Of a stretch of DNA of 64,000 nucleotides, positions 2,928 to 32,230 are shown piece by piece. The notes beneath the pieces were generated by a model that saw only the letters and a program-made list of their open reading frames with translations, made no database searches and was not told where the DNA came from. Within the stretch, counting starts at the first letter, position 1, and each line of letters begins with the position of its first letter. The position numbers and the translations under genes are program-made. The stretch lies in assembly GCA_002269645.1 (NCBI GenBank), contig NIVC01003411.1, positions 35,333-99,332 on the forward strand, in the 5' to 3' direction. Source of the stretch: Macrostomum lignano. Lineage: Eukaryota.

Positions 2928-5738
2928 CTACCACAATTTGGGATATTCGTCCGGTAGCAAAGAATAATTCCGACAGGTGGGACACACTGAGCACTCCTGA
3001 AACCAGCGACGAATACAGGCGTCGTGAAACAGGTGATCACAGTCTAGCCGGCGCACCTGTTCCTTCTGCGGGTTCAAGCTGTCCAGACAGACAATGCAGG
3101 TGTCCTCTTCGGCGCTGCCAGAAACAGTTGCTGAAGTTCTGCTGGCATTGCTTCCGTTTAACTTGTAGGCAGCACCGCCATTGGACTGTTGCTGCTGTCT
3201 ATGCCGAAGGTGCTGCTGCTTAGCCTGATGCTTATCGATCAGAATATTAATTAATTGTTGCTCAATTTGAGCACCAGGCCTGACGGTCATGCTGGCTAAG
3301 GCCTGACTAACCTGATCAACTGTCACGTACGGCAGTATCTGAAATGAAGCAAATTTTTAAATCGTGCAAAAGTTTTTCAATGTCGAAGCTCTCCGACATG
3401 TACTCCATCATATCGTAGTAAGATGCTCAAATTTATTATGCCAAATTGAAAATCACCGAGGTTTGGACAGCTGGCATCAGTCAAAAAGTTCGAAATCAAA
3501 TAAAATATCTTTAATATCGCTGAGCCTCTCTGCAGCAGAAGCTGCAGAACTCTCCAGACTCCATGTTTACAGGGTGCTCAAATTTGACTATTGTTAGAGG
3601 TCTTGAATTCTAATAATTAAAAAATTATTGACATTTAAAAAACGTGGCTCAGCCCCAATTTTGAATTTTACTGGCTGTTCCTTGGGTACACATTGTTCCA
3701 CCACGCTATCAAAGCCTCAATATCATTCCTAGCAATTCTTAGAAACTACAAATTTCATAATGTAGAAAACAGCTTTGCCACGAATTTCGCTTGCTTGTGA
3801 TGCAATCCACTAGCATCACCAAGAATTTAACTTGGGCCTTTACCGCAGATACTAGAAAAACTAGATAAGATGGGCCACTCAGCACATTTGCGTGTAAGCT
3901 ACTTTCAGTTCAGTAGTAAGTTAAACAGAAGCATTTTAATGTATTTTAAAGCCCAGGCTCATTTATTGGCTCTTACATCCCCCTCCCCAAGCTTAAACCC
4001 TCTAACCGCGGCCTTTCCACGCTACCCCCGCCCCCCCCTAATTTTTATTGCCTTTCTCGGAGTTCCAGCCTAAAGTTGCCATGTACATTTCAGTGAACTG
4101 GCTAATGTACATTATGGCTGAACCAATTAGCAAGTTGTTTACGCCTAGAAGTTGGGCTTCTAAACTTATTAAAGTCAGCTGCCTTTATTTTTATAAAATA
4201 GCTTATGTATTCTTCTTTGCTACTGAACTGAAAGTAGAAAGCAATTTTACCAAGTATATATGCCTGAGTGGCATATCTATAGTTATTTTAGTATCTGTGG
4301 TCTTAACTCACGAAAATTTTATTAAGCTTCAGAGGAAATGCTATAGTGACTGTACAAGGTCAAAACCTAAATTTAGTTTATACAAAAAATTCTTTCTTTA
4401 TTTGTTGCCTCTACAAAGAGGGGGGAGGGCGCAGATTGCTAGCCTCGGTGCTAAATATTTTCCTACCTTTTGCACCACAGGCATGTACTTTAGTGCGCCT
4501 CTCTGCTGCTCGGTCAGATCTCCATGAGCGCTGGCAGTCGTGCCGGCTCGCGGACCAATTGGACCAGGCAGGCTGTTGCAAGGCAAGCTGACGTTAACTG
4601 ATCTCGGCCGAGCAGCCGGAGTCGCGGCCTGTGGCGGCTGCAATGAAGGCGGTGGCGGCGGCGGCATCTGCTGCTGCTGCTGCTGCTGTTTAGCAGTTTC
4701 CGCCTCGAGCTTCAGCGCTTTTAGGTCTGGCTTTCGCGGCGAGCGAGGCACCAATTTTTGGAATTGAGTCTTCACGTTGGCCGCCTTGAATTCTTCTTGC
4801 GTGTCAAGTTTGGACCTGGGCGCAAACAGAAAAAGAAGATTTGAAGCTATTTGATATTTCAGTGCACAATCAGAGCAACTGCTTTTAATTTGGCCGCATA
4901 AAAGTTAAAGCCATTCTTTATTCACCCATCCCATCCGGTCACTACGTTTTTCGCCTATGGGCACAAGTTGTGGCTGGATTAATAATGTACAAAGTGTTAA
5001 AAATGCTCAGATATTTAAGAAAAGTGTATGAGAATAAAAAAAGAAAAATAACAACAAAAAAGATAATATTGAGCAGGATCCTTCGTGCAGTAGTCGTATC
5101 TCCGACACTTCATATCTCCGACAAGCTTAACCCTAACTCCAAGCTTAAGCTTTAACTCTAACGGAGATATGAAGTTTCGGGGACATGAAACCCCTTTATT
5201 GGCATGGCTGTTACTTAATAGTGCCATCACCGACGGCATGACTGAGTCAGGTGACTCAGCGAAGTGGTCTTGCTTAATTGATATAGCTCGTACATAAAAA
5301 TAAGTATTTTCTAAGCGCGAAATAACTCAATACTTAGATTTCTGGGCCAAACACTTACCGGCAGTCGGTGCGCAGCTGTTTTAGCGCGATCCGGCTCTGA
5401 TCTAGTTCGGTGCAAAACTCAACCCAGATTTGCTCAGCCGCTGTTAGCGCAGCCGTATGAATAGCTCCAGCCGCCGCCTCATTTAACGATGCTATAACAG
5501 CTCTGGCGTCATTTTCGCGCTCCTTAACCATGCTCATAGCTAGCAGATAGTGCAGATCGACTACCTCGCTTTTAAATTCTTTAGAGGCTTCAGCAGACTC
5601 GGCGCAGGCCAACGAAAACGCGTCGCGTTGTTGTCGCAGAGCGTCATTCTCTCGACGCAATGTGGCAACTTGATCGCGCAAACTATCGGTCTCGTTCTTT
5701 AATAGGTTTATAGGGCATCGCGGCGAACAGGGCTGCAT
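2928..5738 (-). CDS. Coiled-coil / Pro-Gln-rich / C-terminal RING-H2 E3 ubiquitin ligase, 3 exons, 379 aa
   Basis: Exons 5738-5359, 4815-4467, 3338-2928. GT-AG junctions have matching phases (2, 0), total 1140 nt. RING-H2: CIVC...CDHLFHDAC...CPTC followed by LLPDEYPKL, which resembles the DZIP3/TTC3 tail. An in-frame TAA directly precedes the ATG. Confidence 0.85.
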
Positions 5739-7501: not shown

Positions 7502-10500
7502 TTAACAGTTGCAGCCGCTGTTTGCCTGCTTGTCGCGGCCGTCCTGCAGACGAGTGCCTGCGAACAACAGAATAAAAGCACAAGAGTTGATTCTAAAACT
7601 ATGCACACTTGTTTGCATGTGGCTCATACATGCGCAACAGTCGGCCGAGTCGGCCGATCCGGCCGACCGATTTGGCGGCCAACCAAGGAAGTCGCAAAAA
7701 TGCCCACCCGAAAAAATAACCAAGTAGTAGTGCTAAGTAGCTGACGAGGCATTTTGGCTTAATAAGACAGTCATAGTTACTCCTGCCGTTTACCCAAAGT
7801 TGCGTTTATTTGCTTTAGGGTTTTTTTACATGTAAGTCGCATTTTTGGCCAAAAACTACGTCGCATTTTTGTTAAAACTAAGTCGCATGGCCGACCGAAT
7901 TTCGGAGGTTGCGCATGTATGATGTGGCTACTATGAGTACTAGATATATGCTGAATCTTAAGTTTGCAATTCACTAGCCCGATGATGCTAACTAAAACAA
8001 AAAACTGTTGGATTTATGCATCAATGTGCACTATATTAGCGTTAGCGCTTATTGGTGTTAGCTAAAAGTACAATTTATGTTGAATCGTGTCTCAAACTCA
8101 AAGTACACAAGCCTATTGATGATATCTAAAAGTGCAAGAGGATTAATTCCATCTAAAAGTACACTAGACTGATGGTGATAAGCTAAAAGTGCACGAGAGA
8201 ATTAAATTCATTTAAAAGTACACTAGACTGACGGTGATAAGCTAAAATGGCACGAGAGAATGAAATTCATTTAAAAGTACACTAGACTGACGGTGATAAG
8301 CTAAAAGTGCACGAGAGAATGAAATTCATTTAAAAGTACACTAGACTGACGGTGATAAGCTAAAATGGCACGAGAGGATGAAATTCATTTAAAAGTACAC
8401 TAGACTGATGGCGATAAGCTAAAAGTGCACGAGAGAATGAAATTCATATAAAAGTATATAAGCTTGCTGATTAATAGCTAAAAGTGCGCGAGAGAATGAA
8501 CTTCAATCTAAAAGTAAACTAGCCTGCTGATGATAGCTAAAAGTGCAGATGCTAAACGAAATCTTACTCACCGGCCCCGGCAGCCAAATTAGGATCGCAC
8601 TCCAGCGATTCGGCCATCTTGTCGCAGATGACGTCAACCAGTCGTTCGAATACGGCTTTGACGTTGATATTCTCTTTAGCGGAAGTCTCAAAGAACTCGA
8701 GGCCTGCAAATATTTCAGCAATGATAAAATATACTCATTTTTAATTGAAATGTCGGGATATTTTTACTAGATAGTTTATTAGAAAAACACTGCTGATTAA
8801 AAAATTTAAGAAATGTTATAATATTAATTCACACTAAATAGTTCCGACATTTTAGGCCATATTAGCAGTTACGAGGAGGATCTCAAATATAAGAATTTCA
8901 ACATTTACCAATCTCTTCAGCCAATCGTTGGCAGCTTAATTCGCTAATAACTCGATAGTCAGCTAGATCGCACTTGTTGCCAACCAGAACTATGGTGGCA
9001 TCGTGCCAAGCGTGGGCTCTGATCTGAGTACACCTTTAGAATAATAGTCAGTAATAAGTATCTTTTAACAACAGATAACATTCCAAGAGAAATAGAAAAA
9101 TACGCTTAGGGATATTAGAAAACAAATGCATTAAATTCACTAAGCAATATAGGAAATGCACAGCACTTACTCCTAACTCATTTCATGCATCAGTTGCATA
9201 GGAGTGACATTTAATTTTGCTCCTAGCATATAAATCGACAGAATAAGACTTATTTAACAATGGATTTCAGTGGAACAGAGTTCAAGCGTGGCAGCTCCGA
9301 GAGGGAGATCACAGTTGGGAGAATCCCGGAGGAGGAATCCCTAAAGAGGAATCTCTACAGGAGACTCCCTAAAAGGGGAATCCCGAAAGGGGAATTCTAA
9401 AAGGGAATCCCTAAAGTGGAATCCTTAAAGGGGAATCCCTAAAGGGGAATCCCTAAAGGGGAATCCCTAAAGGGGAATCCCTAAAGGGGAATCCCTAAAG
9501 GGGAATCCCTAAAGGGGAATCCCTAAAGGGGAATCCCTAAAGGGGAATCCCTAAAGGGGAATCCCTAAAGGGGAATCCCTAAAGGGGAATCCCTAAAGGG
9601 GAATCCCTAAAGGGGAATCCCTAAAGGGGAATCCCTAAAGGGGAATCCCTAAAGGGGAATCCCTAAAGGGGAATCCCTAAAGGGGAATCCCTAAAGGGGA
9701 ATCCCTAAAGGGGAATCCCTAAAGGGGAATCCCTAAAGGGGAATCCCTATAGGGGAATCCCTAAAGGGGAATCTCTAAAGGGGAATCCCTAAAGGGGAAT
9801 CCCTAAAGGGGAATCTCTAAAGGGGAATCCCTAAATGGGAATCCCTAAAGGGGAATCGCTAGAGGGACATTTTTAAATCAAAATCAGAAAGGGGGAATCC
9901 AAAGGGGAATCTATAAAGTGGAGTCCTAACTAAAAATCTCTAAGGATTTTCTCCACAGGAATTTCCATATATCCGGATAAGAGACCTTAGCAGGGGAATC
10001 GCAAATAAAGAACTTTTCAAATGTTTTTCTCGAATCGCCACCGTACAATATATAATAAGAAAACACAAATACGGTATATAAACACTTATCTTGTGTTCAA
10101 TGCCATTTTCCGCAAGAAATTGTATCTTTTACACAAAAGTAGAATAGAAGAAGCACAAAAGATTGAAAAACATTAATCACTAATAAAAAGATGGCAATGA
10201 AGCAAGTGAACTGCGGTACAATACCCAGATCATGTGCCAGCCTAGCACCGCGCTCAATGGAGACAATGCGACTATCCTCTAAATCGCACTTGTTACCAAT
10301 TAGAGCAATTTTGGCTGTGGACCAGGAGTGAGTCTGTATTGCCGTCACCCTGGGCATGGTAGCGATGCGTATGAGAGGCACCTTTGTTTTAAATAAAACA
10401 CATGTAATAGAAATAAAATCTAAAACGACGAATCCAGTTTTTTAGAAAAAAGGCAAAAAACCATCAAAGAAATAATCTGTTGAACAGCAGGAATACCAAT

Positions 10501-13500
10501 TTGTACTGTTTATACCGACATATACTCAGCAAGTTTCAATTCCTCGGAATTCAAAATGCTATTTCAAGATATTCCAATGGGATGTCTATCAAAATCATCA
10601 GCGCGGAATCCTCACTCAAATCACGCTTTGGTAGTTGGTACCTTCACTCTTAACTGTTGACTATCAAACTTTAATAAAAAGAACAGTCCAAACAAATTCA
10701 CCGAACCGGAATAAAGAAAAAAGTTAATCGAGGAAGAAAAACTACGCTCGTAATTTGAACCAAAAAACACCGGGATTTTTAGGGCTTAGAAATTCGCACC
10801 GAGCTCATTTGCCAGCTTTTGCGCCGTTTTGGTGTCGACTCGGCGCTGACCTGGCTGGCAGTCGCACTTGTTGCCTACCAATACAACAACGGCACCTTGC
10901 CAGGCCTGACCGCGCACCAGCGTCACCCTTTAGTTGTGTGTGCGTGTGCGGTTTTAGAAGACGCAGGTGGTTGGGGTTGAAGTAAACTAATAAACTGTAG
11001 ACTAAAGCAAACTCTAGCCCCGACTTCATGTGGACCAGCCGGCAATATCTTGTCATAGCAAGATCTGTGTATCCCAGCCCTACCCCCACCCCAAGTTAAA
11101 ATAAAAGGGGACAAGATTCTATGTACACATGTACACTAGCCCTACCCCACCCCATATAAAAGGAACGAGATTCTATGTACGCCAGCCCTACCCCCACCCC
11201 AAATAAAAGGGGACGAGATTTTATTTACATCAGCCCTACCCTCAAATAAAAGGGGACGAGATTCTATGTACGCCAGCCCTGTCCCAGGACGAGAATCTAT
11301 GTACCGCCAGCCCTCACCCTGGCCCTCAGATAGATAGATACCGTGAAGGGGACAAGATTTCACATACGCTCGTACATTTTATTAATTTTAGCTAGGGAGA
11401 CTAGGGAGAAGAAAGCCAAGAGATAAAGAAATCAGACGCTACGAAGTTAACTCCAGCTAAATTTGCATACAAGGAAAACAAGGGTAAAATTTAGATTGAC
11501 ACAAGGGAAACAAATTTCAAAATATATGAATAGTGATATCAGTTACAAAAAATAAGTTGCTTTAATATGGTTCCTGCTATATTTTATATTTCCTATAAAT
11601 TTTAAATTGTAATAATAAAGTGCAATGACAACACTGAACATATATAAAAGGTCGGTGTGCACAGGAGCGACAATAAAAGATGCATACAGACACTAATAAA
11701 ATATTGTACCTTAGTACTCATATTTTAATACAAGCGACTTACCAGTCTTGCACGGCATTAAACGAATCCTCGTTGGTAACGTCGTACATTAGAATAAAGC
11801 CCATAGCGCCCCTATAATAGGCTGTGGTGATGGTTCGGTACCTCTCTTGACCAGCTGTGTCCTAAAAAGTAGTAACAGAAAACGCTATTTATACTACTCA
11901 TTTTTACTGAAACGATTTTTAATATAGTTTGTTGCAATTTGCGTCCATTTTGCTATTTTTAAGTTTCGTACGATTCTTAGCTCAAGTTCGGAGATCATGC
12001 TTCGGGGCGGATCCGGAGTGATAAAGGAGTGATTCTCAGTAGATAGATTGGTAGTGATTCTCAGACTCAGGGGAAGATCGGGAGTGATTCTTAGTCGGCG
12101 GATTAGGAGTGATTCTCAACATCAAGGTAAGATCAGAAGTGATTCTCAGTGGACGGATCGAGAATGATTATTGCGTGGCGAATCAGGAGTGGTTCTTAGT
12201 GGGCGGAGATCATAGGTGATTCCCAGGGAGAGATCAAGCGTGATTCTAGGGGCAGATCAGGGGTGATTGTCAGGGCGGATCAGGAGTGATTCTCATGGCG
12301 GATCAGGAGTGATTCTCTGGGCGGATCATGGGTGATTTTATGGCGGATGAGGGGTGATTCTCAGACGGGATCAGGGGTGATTCTCATGGCGAATCAAGAG
12401 TGATTCTCAGGGTGGATCATAGGTGATTTTATGGCGGATGAGGGGTGATTCTCAGCGTGGATCAGGGGTGATTCTCGGGCCGGATCAGGGGTGATTCTCA
12501 GGCCGAATCGGGGTGATTCTCGGGCCGGATCAGGGGTGATTCTCGGGCCGGATCAGGGGTGATTCTAGGGGCGGATCAGGGGTGATTCTAGGGGCGGATC
12601 AGGGGTGATTCTCGGAGCGGATCAGGGGTGATTGTTATGTACAAATAAGAATCATTATGAAACAGCGCTTTGCAACTTTGATTTTGATGTGACGGACCTT
12701 CCGGATCTGACTGCACCATGAAAGCAAGAATGCAAGTAGTTGCAAAGGCTAAGCAGAGTTTGAAATTGACCTGTCGATATAAATTAATAAACCGACCGGG
12801 TCCCGGAGGGCCAATTACTTTGTCGGGTTGAGACGCACAGGAAGTTGCGTCCCAGTGGCAGCGAAATTGATTGCCGCTAGTGGACAAGTTGATAGTCGAT
12901 TCTATCAAACACGCGACAGTCGCACACGCAAAGGATTTAAGCTAATCTAACGGAATGCATAATAACCTTCAGTGGTTTTGATTATCAGTTGTATGAATTA
13001 TTGCCTTAAGAATAAATTAATACAATAGATTGTTACTAATTATAAACTTCACTCATCATTTTTAGAGTCGTGGAATTAACATATAGGAAATAGATTGAGC
13101 GAGATAAAATGAGGAGATATAAGATTCATGATAGGCATAAGGAGAAGATTGACAGAAACAAGGGAAACATGTAAGAGTATAAAAGAGGGCGTGATACATG
13201 GGTTCTAAGATACAGAAGTTTTAGAATACACTAAGGGTCGAGGGATATACAGATAGGTCATAGGAGACACAGATGGGTCATAGAAGACACAGATAGGTCA
13301 TAGGAGATACAAAAGGGTCATGGAAGACACAGATAAGTCATAGGAGACACAGATGGGTCATGAGGGACACAGATAGGTCGTATGAGACACAAAAGGGTCA
13401 TAAGAGACACAGAAAGGTCATAGGAGACACAGATGGGTCATAGAAGACACAGATAGGTCATAGGAGACACATATAGGCCATAGAAGACACAAAAGGGTCA

Positions 13501-14277
13501 TAGGAGACACATATAGGTAATAGAAGACACAAAAGGGTCAGGAGACACAGATGGGTCATAGAAGAAACAAATAGGCCATAGAAGACACAGAAGGGTCATA
13601 GGAGACACAGATAGGTCATAGAAGACACAGAAGGGTCATAGAAGACACAGATAGGTCATAGAAGACACAAAAGGGTCATAGGAGACCCTGAGTGTCATAG
13701 AAGAAACAGAATGGTCATAGGAGACACAGATAGGCCATAGAAGACACAGAAGGGTCATAGGAGACACAGATAGGTAATAGAAGACACAAAAGGGTTATAG
13801 AAGACACAAAAGGGTCATAGAAGACACAGATGGGTCATAGAAGAAACATATAGGCCATAGAAAACACAGAAGGGTCATAGGAGACACAGATAGGTCATAG
13901 AAGACACAGAAGGGTCATAGGAGACACAGATAGGTCATAGAAGACACAGAAGGGTCATAGGAGACTGGGAGTCATTGAGTACACACGGCGAGTCATGACA
14001 AGCGGTTATTGGGGGAGTGGGAGATGTGACCAGAAGCCAGTGAGAGATGAGGCAATAAAGAGAAGCTACTCACCCAGATCTGCAGCTTGACCCGCTTATC
14101 GTGTCTAAAGACGGTCTTGACTTTGAAATCGATGCCAACAGTGGACACGAAGGCGGACGTGAAAGAGTCGTCAGCGTAGCGAAACAGAAACGACGTCTTG
14201 CCAACGGAGGAATTGCCAATAATCAATAATTTGAACATGTAGTCAAAGTTCTGATCGGCCGCATCGCGAGATCCCAT
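7502..14277 (-). CDS. RAB3: Rab3 GTPase, 5 coding-exon positions with 3 alternative versions of exon 3 (211-212 aa)
   Basis: Exon 1 14277-14074 ([55 protein letters not shown]...QIW). Exon 2 11861-11743 ([27 protein letters not shown]). Exon 3a/b/c. Exon 4 8703-8572 ([33 protein letters not shown]). Exon 5 7557-7502 (ends in the CNC prenylation motif). All junctions are GT-AG with consistent phase. Confidence 0.95.
7625..7921. mobile_element. Non-autonomous hAT-type MITE (297 bp) in the last Rab3 intron
   Basis: Perfect 14-bp TIR CATACATGCGCAAC/GTTGCGCATGTATG; exact 8-bp TSD ATGTGGCT at 7617-7624 and 7922-7929. Confidence 0.9.
8150..8545. repeat. 59-bp minisatellite, about 6-7 copies
   Basis: Unit taagctaaaagtgcacgagagaatgaaattcatttaaaagtacactagactgacggtga. 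Confidence 0.9.
8909..9033 (-). CDS. RAB3: Rab3 alternative exon 3c (125 nt)
   Basis: ttctaaag|G TGT ACT...ATT G|gtaaat; encodes (W)[41 protein letters not shown](G); phase 2/1. Confidence 0.88.
9340..9925. repeat. 14-bp minisatellite (GGGGAATCCCTAAA)n, about 30 near-perfect copies plus degenerate flanks
   Basis: Visible tandem array between Rab3 exons 3b and 3c. Confidence 0.95.
10225..10349 (-). CDS. RAB3: Rab3 alternative exon 3b (125 nt)
   Basis: cag|G GTG ACG...CTG G|gtattg; encodes (W)[41 protein letters not shown](G); phase 2/1. Confidence 0.88.
10800..10927 (-). CDS. RAB3: Rab3 alternative exon 3a (128 nt)
   Basis: aag|G GTG ACG...CTC G|gtgcga; encodes (W)[42 protein letters not shown](G); phase 2 in, phase 1 out. 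Confidence 0.8.
11060..11310. repeat. About 47-bp degenerate tandem repeat
   Basis: Recurrent ccagccctacccccaccccaaataaaaggggacgagattctatgtac. Confidence 0.8.
12020..12630. repeat. About 21-bp degenerate minisatellite
   Basis: Recurrent ggcggatcaggggtgattctc. Confidence 0.85.
13245..13965. repeat. About 20-bp minisatellite
   Basis: Recurrent gggtcataggagacacagaa / ggtcatagaagacacagata. Confidence 0.9.
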
Positions 14278-14974
14278 TGCTGCTGCTGCTGCAACTGCGG
14301 TAATAAAATTATCGGTAAATAATAGAGAATTAATAAAACAATAGAAATCTATAAAAGCAACTCTAGAATTCTAGACAGGGAAAAAACATTTAAAGGAACA
14401 GGGAGTCAAAACTGGGGGGGCAGACGCGCACTAGGGACGCACTGAATAGACAGCACAAGAGGAGACGGAACGATCAACACTGCCAAACAGCAGCCAATGA
14501 AAAATCTATATGGCTAAAACGGATAAGGGAGAAGGGAAGAGAGAGAGAGAGCACTGCCTTTGAGCTTGCCAGCGTGGGCGGCAGTTGGCAGCACCGGAAT
14601 CGATTCGACTAAACGCCCCCCCCCCCTGCTCTCACTTCGTAGCTATCATTTCCTTGAAACCGCCGTTACCAACCGGACCGATTCTTCCACAGATAGTTCA
14701 GATCATACACTCCCCTCTCTCTTTCTCTGTCTAGCATAGCAGCTGGGCACTTGAAAGCGTTTCGTTGGGTTAAAAGGCGTCGGGCTGCGGAAGGCATTTA
14801 TAAAATGCTAAACTGCTCCTTCTCCTACCTCTGCGTAGCCAGACCAAGTTTACACCTTGTATTAGAAAGTGAGATTATAGTGCACAGGTTGCTGATCAAT
14901 TCCGACCGATAGCCAGAGGTTACGAGTGCAACAAAGTTAACTCAGTTGGCACGGATCTGGGAGGCTCGCGGTGG

Positions 14975-29800: not shown

Positions 29801-30489
29801 TCTGCCCACATTTTCATTGGCTGGCGTCTTTTCATCTCTCTCTCGCGTGGGCTAGTCCAATCATGTGTCTCGCCGCTGAGGCACCTGATTGACTAGCATT
29901 CCCTTTCTTCTCTCTCGCCCTTCAACTCTGTGATTTTTGCCCCCACCCCCCAGCCCTGCGTGGCTAAGCCCTCCCAGTCCCCTGCACAGTGCTCACCCAG
30001 TATTTATATGCGCGCGCGGCTCTCGCCCTCCCTGCTCTCTCTCTCTCACTCTAGCCCTACGCGTGCTTAAGTGAAAGTGAAGATTCAACTAGAAGTACAT
30101 TCAACTGAAGCTGAAAATATTAGAGGCCACGCCTGCATGAGCGCGACAAGTGACCCAGCCCGGTAAGACGCAGTGTTCGCTTTCGTTAATTTGTATCGTC
30201 TCCATTACTCACTTCTGTCGCCACCGTCTTCCTTCGGGTCTGCGAAGTATCTATACGCCTCCAGACCCGTGCTCACCTCTGCCGCTGCTGAGTGGTTACC
30301 TGCTCACAGCCTCCTCATCTGCATCCCCCTCTCTCCGTGGGGCTGGCCGAGTGTCTGTACGCTCCCAGCCTCTCCACTTCCACCTCGAAGTGTCCGTGCG
30401 CCTCGGGGTCGCCACTCTCTCGCCTATCGCACCCGGCAAGCTCTGGACAGTCCAGTACCCGAACCCTTGATCGCCCCATCTGCGGTCCG

Positions 30490-32230
30490 CACGGACGGAA
30501 GCAGAAAATACAACACGACCGGCTCAGCGAGAGCAGCCGGTATGGCAAGACGACCCCGCGAAAGACTCCGTTTGAGCAGGCGACCAACCCGCGAGGCAGA
30601 GGAGGCCTTGGCGGCTGTCTATCTGCAGCGCCAGCAGGCTGCTGTTAATGACGCCATTCGGGCCGTCTCTGCCGCTGGGCCCGATGCCAGAGGCCGCGTG
30701 GCCTGGTCGGCTATCAATGCTCTGACGGGGCGAAAGCGGCGCATTCCACTCAACCTGTCAGGTGACTCTGCGGACGAGCGCAGGAACGCGCTGCGTGAGT
30801 TCTTCGCCGCCATTGTCAACGCGCCGCCACCCCCGCTGCCAGACAGCCTAACGCTGCCGCCGGAGATGCCATTGCCGGCAGAGGAGAGCTTCAGCCTAGC
30901 ACCAGTCAGCACAGCCAACGTTGTGAGGCTCGCCCAACAGTTACCGGGCGGGAAAGCGCTGGGTCCGGACGAGGTGCCCATCGAGGCGCTACGCATCCAC
31001 TGTGTGGCTAGTGGGGCCGCCAGAGTGATGAATCGCGTGCTCTTCGGTGAGGAGGCACCCAACGAATGGACCACGGCGCACATCGTCGCAGTTCCTAAGA
31101 AGCCGGGCACCACGAGGCTTGAGGAGCATCGAGGTATCTGCCTTCAGTCCTGCGCTGCGAAGTTGTTCAACCGGATGCTGTTATCGCGGTTGCAGCCCGT
31201 GTTGGATCCGTACCTGCGCCATGAGCAGAACGGCTTCCGGCCCCATCGCGGCACAGTGACGCTGATCCTAGCTCTTCGTCGAGTCATCGAGGAAGCACGG
31301 ATACGCCAGTCGATCCTGATTGTTATCTTCATAGATTTCAAGAAGGCATTCGACTCGGTCGTCAGGTCTGTGCTTCCAAAGGTGCACCGTGCGTACAACG
31401 TGCCAGAGCAGCTGATTTCCGCCATCATGGCGATCTACCGTGATACGAAAGCTGCTATTTTAACACCGGACAGCCTATCGGACTTCTTTGAGACATCCAG
31501 GGAGATACGCTTGCGCCGTTCCTGATCGTTCTGGTGCTTGACTGGGAACTGCGGACTGCTCTTCCTACAAACGACGACGGCTTTCTGTTGCGGCGACGCG
31601 TGGGTCGACGTCAACCGGAGAGGCGGCTCAGCGTGCTTGGCTACGCTGACGACCTCGCCCTGCTGTCCTTAACTGTTGAGGGCGCCCAACGACAACTGGA
31701 CAAGCTATTTGCTGTTGCGGCGAGTGTCGGCCTGGTGGTCAACACGCAAAAGACCGTCGTGCTCTGCGTGCCGGACGACATCGAGGCAGCGATTTTGTGC
31801 CGAGGCGCTGATGAACAGGCGACAGAGCTTCCGCGTCGGCGTCCGCGAGGATTTGCGGCGTCGCCGCGGGCTTGCCTGGGCTGCCTTTCGTTCTGTGAGG
31901 GCAGTCCTGCAGTCCGAGGCCTTACCTGACCGCCAGTGGGCGGCGTTGTTCCAACGCGGCTCTGTATCGCCGCGCTGGCCTGGTCCGTCCAAGCGACCTG
32001 CTGCGCCGTCGGCGACTCCAGCTGGCAGGCCACATCATCCGCGCCGAGTCGTACTGCCCAGAGCCGGTGCAGGAGGTGCTGCTGCTAACGCTGCAGGCAC
32101 CCTACCGGCGGGGACAGGCGCGCACTCGGCGTTTCGTCGACGGCCTGCTGACTGACGCCGGCGCCCCGGATTCGGCCGGCGGCGTGGCGTTCATTCGCGA
32201 CCTGGCCTTGAAGCGCGCCCTGTGACGCTA
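30490..32230 (+). mobile_element. RTE-like non-LTR retrotransposon reverse transcriptase, 5'-truncated and frameshifted
   Basis: ORF 30173-31525 has RGICLQSCAAKLFNRMLLSR, EQNGFRPHR and FIDFKKAFDSV. The QGDTLAPFL motif is broken by a deletion near 31500. ORF 31534-31929 has GYADDLALL. No endonuclease domain seen. Confidence 0.9.

Follow-up and report, generated by a model that had tools for sequence, protein, structure and literature searches.

The locus examined here raises the question of whether a single Rab3 gene of Macrostomum lignano, in which three tandem versions of one internal exon lie between constitutive exons, can give rise to three Rab3 proteins. The gene was found in the window, that is, the whole 64,000-nucleotide stretch of contig NIVC01003411.1 that we analysed, and matches this contig at 100% identity. 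It lies on the minus strand and comprises five coding exons, the third of which is present as versions 3a, 3b and 3c (Table 1).

Gene layout and reading frame

The preliminary description of this DNA had reported three homologous, AG/GT-bounded copies of exon 3, of 128, 125 and 125 nt, and our analysis agrees with it in every detail. Specifically, each copy has its own AG and GT, enters in phase 2 and leaves in phase 1, opens with the G that completes a Trp codon, keeps the xW and GNKCD residues and ends with LA..[LI]G. In a tblastn search of the 64-kb window with a fly Rab3 query, the three copies were matched at E = 6e-14, 7e-10 and 9e-7, and the same search detected neither a fourth exon-3 copy nor any copy of the canonical exon 3 in this window.

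Table 1. Features of the Rab3 gene in window coordinates; a slash marks a splice junction.
Feature	Position	Strand	Remarks
Coding exon 1	14277-14074	-	ATG at 14277; P-loop GNSSVGKT and switch I; 3' end QIW/gtgagt, phase 0
Coding exon 2, constitutive	11861-11743	-	DTAGQE...AVQDW; 3' end GAC TG/gtaagt, phase 2
Exon 3a, 128 nt	10927-10800	-	acceptor cacacaactaaag/G, donor CG/gtgcga; one codon longer, most divergent
Exon 3b, 125 nt	10349-10225	-	acceptor cccag/G, donor GG/gtattg; nearest to canonical Rab3
Exon 3c, 125 nt	9033-8909	-	acceptor ttctaaag/G, donor TG/gtaaat; version in all deposited gene models
Coding exon 4, constitutive	8703-8572	-	5' /GC completes Gly; 3' end G/gtgagt, phase 1
Last coding exon (exon 5)	7557-7502	-	CNC, then stop TAA; CXC prenylation motif typical of Rab3
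14-nt minisatellite GGAATCCCTAAAGG x 38	9334-9866	none	occupies much of the 1191-nt intron between 3b and 3c
Further intronic tandem arrays	8100-8547, 11129-11280, 12208-12633, 13249-13965

It had also been claimed that the frame is kept by single inclusion only, and this proved correct. Any one copy yields an open Rab3 of 211 or 212 aa, and zero, any two or all three copies shift the frame, the first stops falling at codons 113, 152, 164/165 and 152. In its layout the locus conforms to a mutually exclusive cluster, and Rab3 is encoded only by single-version transcripts. Transcripts carrying none, two or three versions should be removed by nonsense-mediated decay, because of their premature stops.

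The donors of all three versions are weaker than the constitutive donors of exons 1, 2 and 4, and weaker donors are typical of regulated exons. An AT-rich 17-mer at 11693-11710 showed imperfect pairing with three intronic sites. Docking/selector RNA pairing was not detected: the duplex energies of constitutive versus variable-exon flanks were like those of shuffles (z from -1.5 to +2.4). At the 5' end, the deposited partial CDS of the gene starts at window position 14292, and a ccgcag/TT situated about 17 nt upstream of the ATG is probably a 3' or trans-splice acceptor.

Rab3 identity and the loop encoded by exon 3

The assignment of the gene to Rab3, already made in the preliminary description, is supported by the G-domain motifs, by the C-terminal CNC and by the best structure matches. 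All three isoforms contain the P-loop GxxxxGKT, DTAGQE, NKxD and SAK motifs. Exons 1 and 2 are together 97% identical to fly Rab3 (exon 1 by itself: 97% over 66 aa), and the protein terminates in SGCNC, which contains the CXC geranylgeranylation motif. The best matches among solved structures are Rab3C, Rab3B, fly Rab3, Rab3A and Rab3D (E = 1e-104 to 1e-90), other Rab structures scoring lower (Rab8A, 4e-63; Rab27A, 1e-59).

Canonical Rab3 proteins of insects through to vertebrates all carry the Rab3 signature TYSWDNAQ in the alpha3/beta5 loop (RabSF3/RabCDR2). So does a second M. lignano Rab3 paralogue (P0137, L003/L004), whose exon boundaries are the same and whose only exon 3 is canonical. 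This signature was found in none of 3a, 3b and 3c, whose loops read GQAWQGAV, THSWSTAK and AHAWHDAT, respectively, and the preliminary description had overlooked that none of the three versions is the canonical Rab3 exon. The version nearest to canonical Rab3, 3b, has 22-25 of 41-42 residues alike. Judged from its sequence, the M. lignano gene is a Rab3 by every other feature considered above, but one with a non-canonical CDR2.

Exon 3 is predicted to encode the C-terminal half of helix alpha3, followed by the alpha3/beta5 loop, by strand beta5, which contains NKCD, and by helix alpha4, and the nucleotide switch regions would be constant across the isoforms. The alpha3/beta5 loop, termed RabCDR2, corresponds to WDN124-126 of fly Rab3 (PMC4552854), and RabSF3, which corresponds to RabCDR2, contacts the SGAWFF motif of rabphilin (PMC9308819); the loop would form one wall of the pocket for this motif of rabphilin-type effectors. 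Since the exon encodes RabCDR2, the isoforms probably differ in effector binding, and we would expect them to share GTPase cycling and vesicle targeting and to differ in effector or regulator preference. A functional difference is not guaranteed, since fly Rab3 whose CDR2 loop residues had been changed to alanine functioned unimpaired at the neuromuscular junction (PMC4552854).

Divergence, constraint and use of the three versions

With modest confidence, we lean towards the reading that this M. lignano Rab3 paralogue has its exon 3 in three tandem versions, the products of ancient duplication, exactly one of which is spliced into each transcript. The cluster is probably mutually exclusive in use, and 3a and 3b would be spliced in as minor or cell-type-specific alternatives.

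In pairwise comparisons the three versions have 15-19 of 41 residues in common, 3b and 3c having 19, as counted before. The earlier view that the copies are old yet intact was likewise upheld. They are old, as judged by the saturation of their synonymous sites (pS 0.55-0.81); pN among them falls below this range (0.39-0.43), each copy has an open frame, and W, LxGNKCD, R and LA..LG are kept. A second genomic copy of the locus, on an independent contig, was available for comparison. Comparison of the two copies shows complete (100%) identity of 3a and 3b, splice sites included, and two substitutions in 3c, one of them non-synonymous (Cys to Gly). Around 3a, mismatches come no closer than 73 nt on the upstream side and 12 nt on the downstream side, and a mismatch-free island of this kind would arise by chance with an estimated P of ~0.01. 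The identity of 3b is uninformative, since the surrounding ~700 nt of intron are likewise mismatch-free, and the constraint test as a whole is of low power, because the two genomic copies are only ~2% diverged.

As for transcript and protein support, the deposited gene models PAA51520.1 (isoform c), PAA74454.1 and UniProt A0A1I8HI31 all use 3c only, and proteins with 3a or 3b were not found among 5.8 billion cluster representatives. The 3c protein cluster has three members only, all from NCBI or UniRef, so M. lignano transcripts of this gene seem to be absent from that collection. The M. lignano annotation was derived from RNA-seq with TACO --isoform-frac 0.75, by which minor isoforms (<75% of the major one) were dropped (PMC5730564). 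For this reason the missing 3a and 3b models are weak evidence, and models with 3c only would be expected even if 3a and 3b were used.

These data bear on three other explanations of the locus. It is exceedingly improbable that the trio of exons arose through faulty assembly or collapse, or that it represents separate overlapping genes, and the preliminary description had also held an artefact to be unlikely. The Mlig_3_7 assembly is indeed highly redundant and repeat-rich (PMC5730564), and the introns of the gene are full of minisatellites; however, the exon copies are only 50-54% identical in nucleotides, two independent contigs carry all three with their order unchanged, and a single gene encloses them between its exons 2 and 4 with matching phases. 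We regard it as quite improbable that 3c is the sole version ever used, which would make 3a and 3b dead remnants and leave the gene with one unusually divergent Rab3 protein. The three independent gene models that carry 3c alone, the lack of database proteins with 3a or 3b, and the best acceptor and donor of the cluster, both belonging to 3c, are what such a gene would display. Yet both 3a and 3b keep the frame, AG/GT and the fold-defining residues despite the saturated synonymous sites, and the second genomic copy shows no substitution in either of them, compared with two in the expressed 3c. In addition, the annotation pipeline discarded isoforms that reached less than 75% of the major one, and in four other phyla alternative use of the orthologous exon is demonstrable (see below).

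A partly decayed cluster, in which 3c and perhaps 3b are used while 3a, or else just one of 3a and 3b, survives as a pseudo-exon relic that the spliceosome now passes over, is somewhat unlikely in our estimate; here the frame would be open only through shortness and the recent divergence of the genomic copies. Several features of 3a are in line with decay. Its splice signals are the weakest among the versions (a CA-rich, weak acceptor tract with a poor polypyrimidine tract, and a weak donor), its sequence is the most divergent, with a one-codon insertion and the conserved QIKT altered to LVRG, its dN/dS against a sister exon is the highest (0.64 versus 3b, the least clear signal), no model or database protein uses it, and by our calculation chance alone would leave a frame of 42 codons open with a probability of ~0.14. 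Against this, 3a keeps KLA.ELG and departs from otherwise conserved positions no more often than the expressed 3c (5 of 18 in both), it stands as a mismatch-free island with intact splice sites in an intron that is 3-4% diverged, and the AlphaFold2 model of its segment has normal secondary structure (alpha3-loop-beta5-loop-alpha4, pLDDT 67-87).

The same exon in other Spiralia and related Rab systems

The preliminary description had stated that no such arrangement was known in Rab3. This is contradicted both by RefSeq isoforms and by tandem exons in the snail Batillaria. RefSeq models of Haliotis, Gigantopelta, oysters, scallops, Lingula, Tubulanus and Watersipora show alternative splicing of this exon, so that exon-3 isoform pairs are on record for molluscs as well as for one brachiopod, one nemertean and one bryozoan. 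The members of a pair are identical outside the exon in Haliotis rufescens (X1/X3), Lingula (X1/X2), Tubulanus (X1/X2), Watersipora (X2/X1) and Gigantopelta (X1/X2); example accessions are XP_046338157.1/XP_046338159.1 for Haliotis rufescens and XP_013381632.1/XP_013381633.1 for Lingula anatina. At the Batillaria locus (L005), tandem 125-nt exons at 9000-9124 and 9827-9951, both of the form ag/G...G/gt, are flanked by DTAGQE...QDW and LEFFETSAK, with phases as in M. lignano, and rotifer Rab3 has a tandem exon pair too. The variant exon lies 5' of the canonical one in Batillaria and 3' of it in the rotifer; since the exon order differs between lineages, independent duplications are possible. 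No paper on the spiralian Rab3 exon-3 arrangement was found in the literature searched, which leaves database annotation as its source. On the sequence evidence, the M. lignano cluster is real and not unprecedented.

The spiralian RefSeq pairs resemble the M. lignano gene in gene family, exon, exon boundaries (from the G completing Trp to the G starting Gly) and 125-nt class. In addition, their variant exons, like 3b and 3c, have H at the canonical Y position and an altered alpha3/beta5 loop. Compared with the variant signature T-H-A-W (versus T-Y-S-W), 3c reads A-H-A-W and has the H-A-W of spiralian variants, 3b reads T-H-S-W, like the rotifer variant, and 3a reads G-Q-A-W, the remaining diagnostic positions being mixed. 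A neighbour-joining split between the canonical exons and all variants together with 3a, 3b and 3c obtained 76% bootstrap, although long-branch attraction is possible with these fast-evolving 42-residue segments. Whereas those spiralian Rab3 genes have two versions, one of which is canonical YSWDNAQ, M. lignano has three, none canonical, with transcript support for one version only; its canonical partner exon is absent from the same gene and sits only in the separate paralogue.

It may be that all three M. lignano versions are of the non-canonical variant class and that the separate paralogue, with its single exon 3, supplies the canonical YSWDNAQ exon. A likely history would begin with an ancestral canonical/variant exon pair, which was resolved by gene duplication, the variant exon being triplicated afterwards. 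We put forward only tentatively, as possible rather than probable, the wider proposal that a mutually exclusive exon pair re-tuning RabCDR2, the effector-specificity loop, in the main synaptic-vesicle Rab is ancient and spiralian-wide, and that Macrostomum has canonical-only and variant-only genes, with the variant triplicated. One locus would then provide three cell-type-specific Rab3 proteins with differing preference among rabphilin, RIM-I and RIM-II; both RIM types are retained in lophotrochozoans (PMC7456537). If true, this would be a clean natural case in which alternative splicing and gene duplication have been exchanged for one another at a presynaptic hub.

Similar solutions are found in other Rab genes. 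Mammalian Rab6A/Rab6A' is like M. lignano Rab3 in that a Rab is diversified through a mutually exclusive, tandemly duplicated internal exon, and the Rab6A and Rab6A' isoforms have the same GTPase core and different partner interactions. This mutually exclusive duplicated exon was reportedly described in mammals, with experimentally validated isoforms, by Echard et al. 2000. It concerns, however, another Rab, another exon and two copies, with three residues differing, whereas the M. lignano copies have only 15-19 of 41 residues in common.

In RAB37, a substitution derived from a tandem exon duplication is conserved between vertebrates and invertebrates, and in its exons buried residues are conserved and the differing residues form a surface patch, for which a change of partner has been proposed (PMC8373072). 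RAB37 belongs to the same secretory Rab group as Rab3 and has homologous alternative exons; unlike M. lignano Rab3, it is another gene with two versions rather than three, and has transcript and proteomic support (PMC8373072). Finally, vertebrates, with Rab3A-D, are like M. lignano in having several Rab3 proteins with a common core, M. lignano also possessing the canonical gene P0137. The vertebrate diversity results from whole-gene duplication, and all four proteins keep the canonical YSWDNAQ, whereas the M. lignano exon versions diverge in precisely that loop.

Architecture and coding content of the Rab3 gene

By reading the minus strand between 8400 and 12000, and through a tblastn search of the window with a fly Rab3 query, we found a complete minus-strand Rab3 gene of five coding exons, with three tandem versions of exon 3 (3a, 3b and 3c) and with AG and GT at all the exon boundaries. 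No fourth copy of exon 3 was detected by tblastn anywhere in the 64-kb window. Specifically, the first G of each exon-3 version completes the Trp codon, and its last G is the first base of a Gly codon. Following in silico joining, a single version gave an open frame, 212 aa long for isoform a and 211 aa long for isoforms b and c; inclusion of none, any two or all three versions shifted the frame, with first stops at codons 113, 152, 164/165 and 152, and every such premature stop has at least one further exon junction downstream. Nonsense-mediated decay would be expected to remove mis-spliced products of this type.

In conclusion, these data show that only single inclusion of exon 3 encodes a protein and that the versions are laid out as in a three-member cluster of mutually exclusive exons. 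All the factual statements of the preliminary description on exon layout, phases and frame were borne out by reading, tblastn, splice-site check and in silico joining, and alignment confirmed 3b and 3c to be identical at 19 of 41 residues. An assembly artefact was rejected on account of the presence of the same exons in a second genomic copy of the locus and of the divergence among the exon copies.

Coordinates of the Rab3 coding exons, intronic tandem arrays and neighbouring genes (window positions; L002, numbering of the NIVC01003411.1 locus)
Feature	Position	Strand	Remark
Second small GTPase gene	3-443 (L002 23850-24527)	-	cut by window start
RING-finger gene, 379 aa	~2928-5738 (L002 18555-21365)	-	directly downstream of Rab3
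Last coding exon	7557-7502	-	ends CNC-TAA
59-mer x 7.6	8100-8547		intronic tandem array
Exon 4	8703-8572	-	begins with GC
Exon 3c	9033-8909	-	125 nt; tblastn and reading
14-mer GGAATCCCTAAAGG x 38	9334-9866		tandem array, intron 3b-3c
Exon 3b	10349-10225	-	125 nt; tblastn and reading
Exon 3a	10927-10800	-	128 nt; tblastn and reading
43-mer x 3.3	11129-11280		intronic tandem array
Coding exon 2	11861-11743	-	ends with TG
23/91-mer x 18	12028-12633		intronic tandem array
20/40-mer x 36	13249-13965		intronic tandem array
Coding exon 1	14277-14074	-	ATG at 14277
Protein kinase gene, 603 aa	18769-22828 (L002 1465-5524)	-	upstream of Rab3, same strand

The best solved-structure matches are Rab3C, Rab3B, fly Rab3, Rab3A and Rab3D (E = 1e-104 to 1e-90), followed by Rab8A (E = 4e-63). 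The protein has all the G-domain motifs as well as a C-terminal CXC, and in exons 1 and 2 its identity to fly Rab3 is 97%. The sole Rab3 hallmark absent is the alpha3/beta5-loop signature TYSWDNAQ, near-invariant in the retrieved canonical Rab3 proteins of insects, ticks, nematodes, tunicates and vertebrates; at this position 3a reads GQAWQGAV, 3b THSWSTAK and 3c AHAWHDAT.

Few presynaptic proteins are as conserved as Rab3, for which gene duplication is usually considered the only route of diversification. Alignments place exon 3 at residues equivalent to 116-157 of fly Rab3 and, combined with the secondary structure of an AlphaFold2 model, indicate that it covers the C-terminal half of alpha3, the alpha3/beta5 loop, beta5 with NKCD, and alpha4. 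This loop is the second Rab complementarity-determining region, formed in fly Rab3 mostly by WDN124-126 (PMC4552854); RabSF3 corresponds to RabCDR2, and the RabCDRs touch the SGAWFF motif of rabphilin-3A in structure 1ZBD (PMC9308819). Structural work names the loop as an effector-specificity determinant. If all three exons are used, the flatworm would make three Rab3 proteins differing precisely there. The P-loop, both switch regions, CDR1, CDR3 and the lipid anchor would be unchanged across the isoforms, while one wall of the effector-specificity pocket and the alpha4 surface would change, so that the isoforms should cycle and localise alike and differ in partner preference. Fly Rab3 with an alanine-substituted WDN still rescued the active-zone phenotype (PMC4552854), and therefore CDR2 changes need not be functionally large.

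Exon-3 classes in other Spiralia and in the M. lignano paralogue

Sorting the exon-3 segments of the retrieved Rab3 proteins led to the identification, beside the canonical TYSWDNAQ type, of a second class (CTQIKTHAWSNAS...) in gastropods, a chiton, bivalves and the brachiopod Lingula. Two RefSeq isoforms of one gene, differing in the exon-3 segment only and identical elsewhere, are on record for Haliotis rufescens (X1/X3), Lingula anatina (X1/X2), the nemertean Tubulanus polymorphus (X1/X2), the bryozoan Watersipora subatra (X2/X1) and Gigantopelta aegis (X1/X2). In addition, Batillaria and Nucella gene models read through both versions. The Batillaria locus carries two tandem 125-nt exons, at 9000-9124 (variant) and 9827-9951 (canonical), having, like those of the window gene, an ag before the first G, a gt after the last G and the same exon 2 ending. 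A tandem pair, canonical first, is also found in the bdelloid rotifer Adineta steineri (positions 3648-4040 of its locus, L006). The deposited models of Adineta steineri and Didymodactylos (P0033) read their two tandem versions as one long exon; both Didymodactylos copies are of canonical type, and separate lineages may therefore have duplicated exon 3 independently. The locus of the schistosomatid Trichobilharzia has a single, canonical exon 3, and no second one was found there, its 17-kb intron included.

As judged from the sequences compared, exon-3 alternation is common to at least five spiralian phyla, and the window gene is a canonical-less member of this known class, differing from the other spiralian pairs in having three versions, none of them canonical. 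The RefSeq pairs and the Batillaria tandem exons contradict the preliminary description, whose author knew of no Rab3 precedent. The literature searched yielded no description of an alternative Rab3 exon 3, and the alternation appears to be already in databases and undescribed in print. Rab6A/A' is one of the nearest published Rab cases. RAB37 is another (PMC8373072). This five-phylum, apparently unpublished alternative exon, which lies in the effector-specificity loop, may be of more interest than the window gene itself: to neurobiologists studying Aplysia, Lymnaea, oysters or flatworms it presents a concrete source of heterogeneity, synaptic or secretory, that can be put to the test, and it offers one protein in which splicing-based and duplication-based diversification can be compared.

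A second M. lignano Rab3 gene (P0137, Mlig019484g2), present on two contigs, has the same exon boundaries as the window gene, a compact 2.1-kb structure and a single canonical exon 3 (CTQIKTYSWDNAQ...). Its intron after exon 3 is of the GC-AG type, beginning GCAAGC (11516 in L003, one of its two loci, and the equivalent position in the other, L004), whereas all three window versions have GT donors. The positions diagnostic of the canonical and variant classes are mixed in 3a, 3b and 3c: 3c has H-A-W, as the mollusc, brachiopod, nemertean and bryozoan variants, 3b has H-S-W, as the rotifer variant, and 3a has Q-A-W. Neighbour-joining of 27 exon peptides separated the canonical exons, that of the paralogue included, from the variants plus 3a, 3b and 3c with 76% bootstrap, a split that may reflect long-branch attraction, given 43 columns and fast-evolving sequences. 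The 5' start GGTGACG is common to 3a and 3b. It is plausible, though unproven, that one ancestral Rab3 gene held a canonical/variant exon pair, which gene duplication and reciprocal exon loss would then have resolved, the variant being afterwards triplicated in the window gene.

Evidence for and against the use of 3a, 3b and 3c

All three deposited models carry 3c: the GenBank proteins PAA51520.1 (BOX15_Mlig029172g2; 216 aa, identical to isoform c apart from five in-frame Ala codons in front of it) and PAA74454.1, and UniProt A0A1I8HI31, a read-through fusion of Rab3 exons 1-4 with the downstream RING-finger gene. Two full-length searches, one query of concatenated exons and junction flanks and an exact look-up returned no 3a or 3b protein, the best identities of the junction query being 50-69%, all to ordinary Rab3. 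The absence of such proteins is uninformative, since the collection is without assembled M. lignano transcripts of the gene: just three members make up the isoform c cluster, and assembled sequencing runs contributed none of them. As we understand it, TACO run with --isoform-frac 0.75 drops any isoform that does not reach 75% of the major one. The M. lignano genome annotation was built with that setting (PMC5730564), and for this reason too the absence is weak evidence. In fairness, the models can be read as showing isoform c to be the major one in whole animals. The annotation of the gene is incomplete, as 3a and 3b are unannotated. Of the proposal that one locus yields three isoforms, isoform c is documented by the deposited models, and isoforms a and b are only plausible. 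That 3c is the sole exon ever used, as the deposited models taken by themselves would have it, we hold to be quite improbable, considering that in the second genomic copy 3a and 3b show no substitution, against two, one of them non-synonymous, in 3c.

Between the exon-3 copies, pS is 0.55-0.81 (saturated) and pN 0.39-0.43, so the copies are old and were under protein-level constraint through much of their history; dN/dS ratios are mostly undefined because of this saturation. The W, [LV][VI]GNKCD, R and LA..[LI]G are kept in all three. Among 18 positions at least 90% conserved in 23 reference exons, 3a and 3c each depart at five and 3b at three; avoidance of conserved positions by substitutions is modest only (hypergeometric P = 0.027 for 3a, 0.027 for 3b and 0.13 for 3c).

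The second copy adds a local indication for 3a, whose nearest inter-copy mismatches are 73 nt away on the upstream side and 12 nt away on the downstream side, the remaining intron being 3-4% diverged; by our own estimate, P is about 0.01 for no mismatch in its 128 nt. For 3b, inter-copy identity is uninformative, because the exon sits in a mismatch-free tract of about 700 nt, and a crude test on 3a plus 3b (0/253 nt against 1.35% intron divergence, P = 0.03) is compromised by such tracts around 3b. Of these inter-copy tests, only the local one on 3a keeps some value.

A dead copy, for which 3a would be the candidate, is suggested by its CA-rich, pyrimidine-poor acceptor region, its gtgcga donor, its one-codon insertion and the least convincing dN/dS (0.64 versus 3b). 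The donors of 3a, 3b and 3c are all weaker than those of the constitutive exons, as expected of regulated exons and equally of decaying ones. However, 3a is free of inter-copy mismatches within a diverged intron, and its departures from conserved positions equal those of the expressed 3c, so that we regard the loss of one copy as unlikely. The AlphaFold2 model of isoform a is poor overall (mean pLDDT 64, 36-sequence alignment), and its 3a segment has pLDDT 67-87 and the expected helix-strand-helix order. All together, we consider it somewhat probable that all three versions are used, mutually exclusively.

An inverted-repeat scan and RNAduplex against shuffles revealed no Dscam-type competing RNA structures or docking-selector pairing beyond chance. 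An AT-rich 17-mer at 11693-11710, 33-50 nt into the intron after exon 2, is imperfectly complementary to 11210-11225 (upstream of 3a), 10043-10059 (downstream of 3b) and 8771-8782 (downstream of 3c); this pairing is probably due to chance, the duplex energies being no better than those of shuffles.

Second genomic copy, introns and neighbouring genes

Across the 8 kb that were aligned, the window is 100% identical to M. lignano contig NIVC01003411.1 (assembly GCA_002269645.1). An insect source, suggested at first by the resemblance of exons 1 and 2 to fly Rab3, was rejected on account of this exact match to a free-living flatworm. The second copy of the locus (L001, on NIVC01000946.1, encoding PAA74454.1) is 94-97% identical to the window gene, which fits the assembly redundancy documented for the M. 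lignano DV1 line (PMC5730564). Exons 1, 2, 3a, 3b and 4 are identical in the two; the coding differences are two amino-acid changes, Cys to Gly in exon 3c and Asp to Glu, and the in-frame loss of 3 nt, which turns NSGCNC into NGCNC immediately before the prenylation motif (window 7502-7557). Mismatch-free tracts of 500-700 nt (L002 13816-14518 and 14863-15359; window ~10477-9775 and ~9430-8934), which include non-repetitive intron, break up sequence elsewhere 2-4% diverged, a pattern suggesting gene conversion or mosaic ancestry of duplicated chromosomes.

Every long Rab3 intron is largely filled by its own, different tandem array, and in the 3b-3c intron the inter-copy mismatches are confined to the 14-mer array. 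The suffix g2 of the gene name and an acceptor-like ccgcag just upstream of the Rab3 ATG suggest, drawing on PMC5730564, that Rab3 occupies the second place in a polycistronic unit resolved by trans-splicing. The second small GTPase gene, downstream of Rab3 on the same strand, is apparently intronless and encodes 225 aa about 42% identical to Rab3 (FDYQFRVIIIGDTMVGKSS...WDTAGHEKFRSITRSYYRN). Rfam and tRNA scans of the window gave no matches. Finally, positions 30001-32000 form a GC-rich block (GC 0.605, against 0.31-0.52 in the rest of the window).
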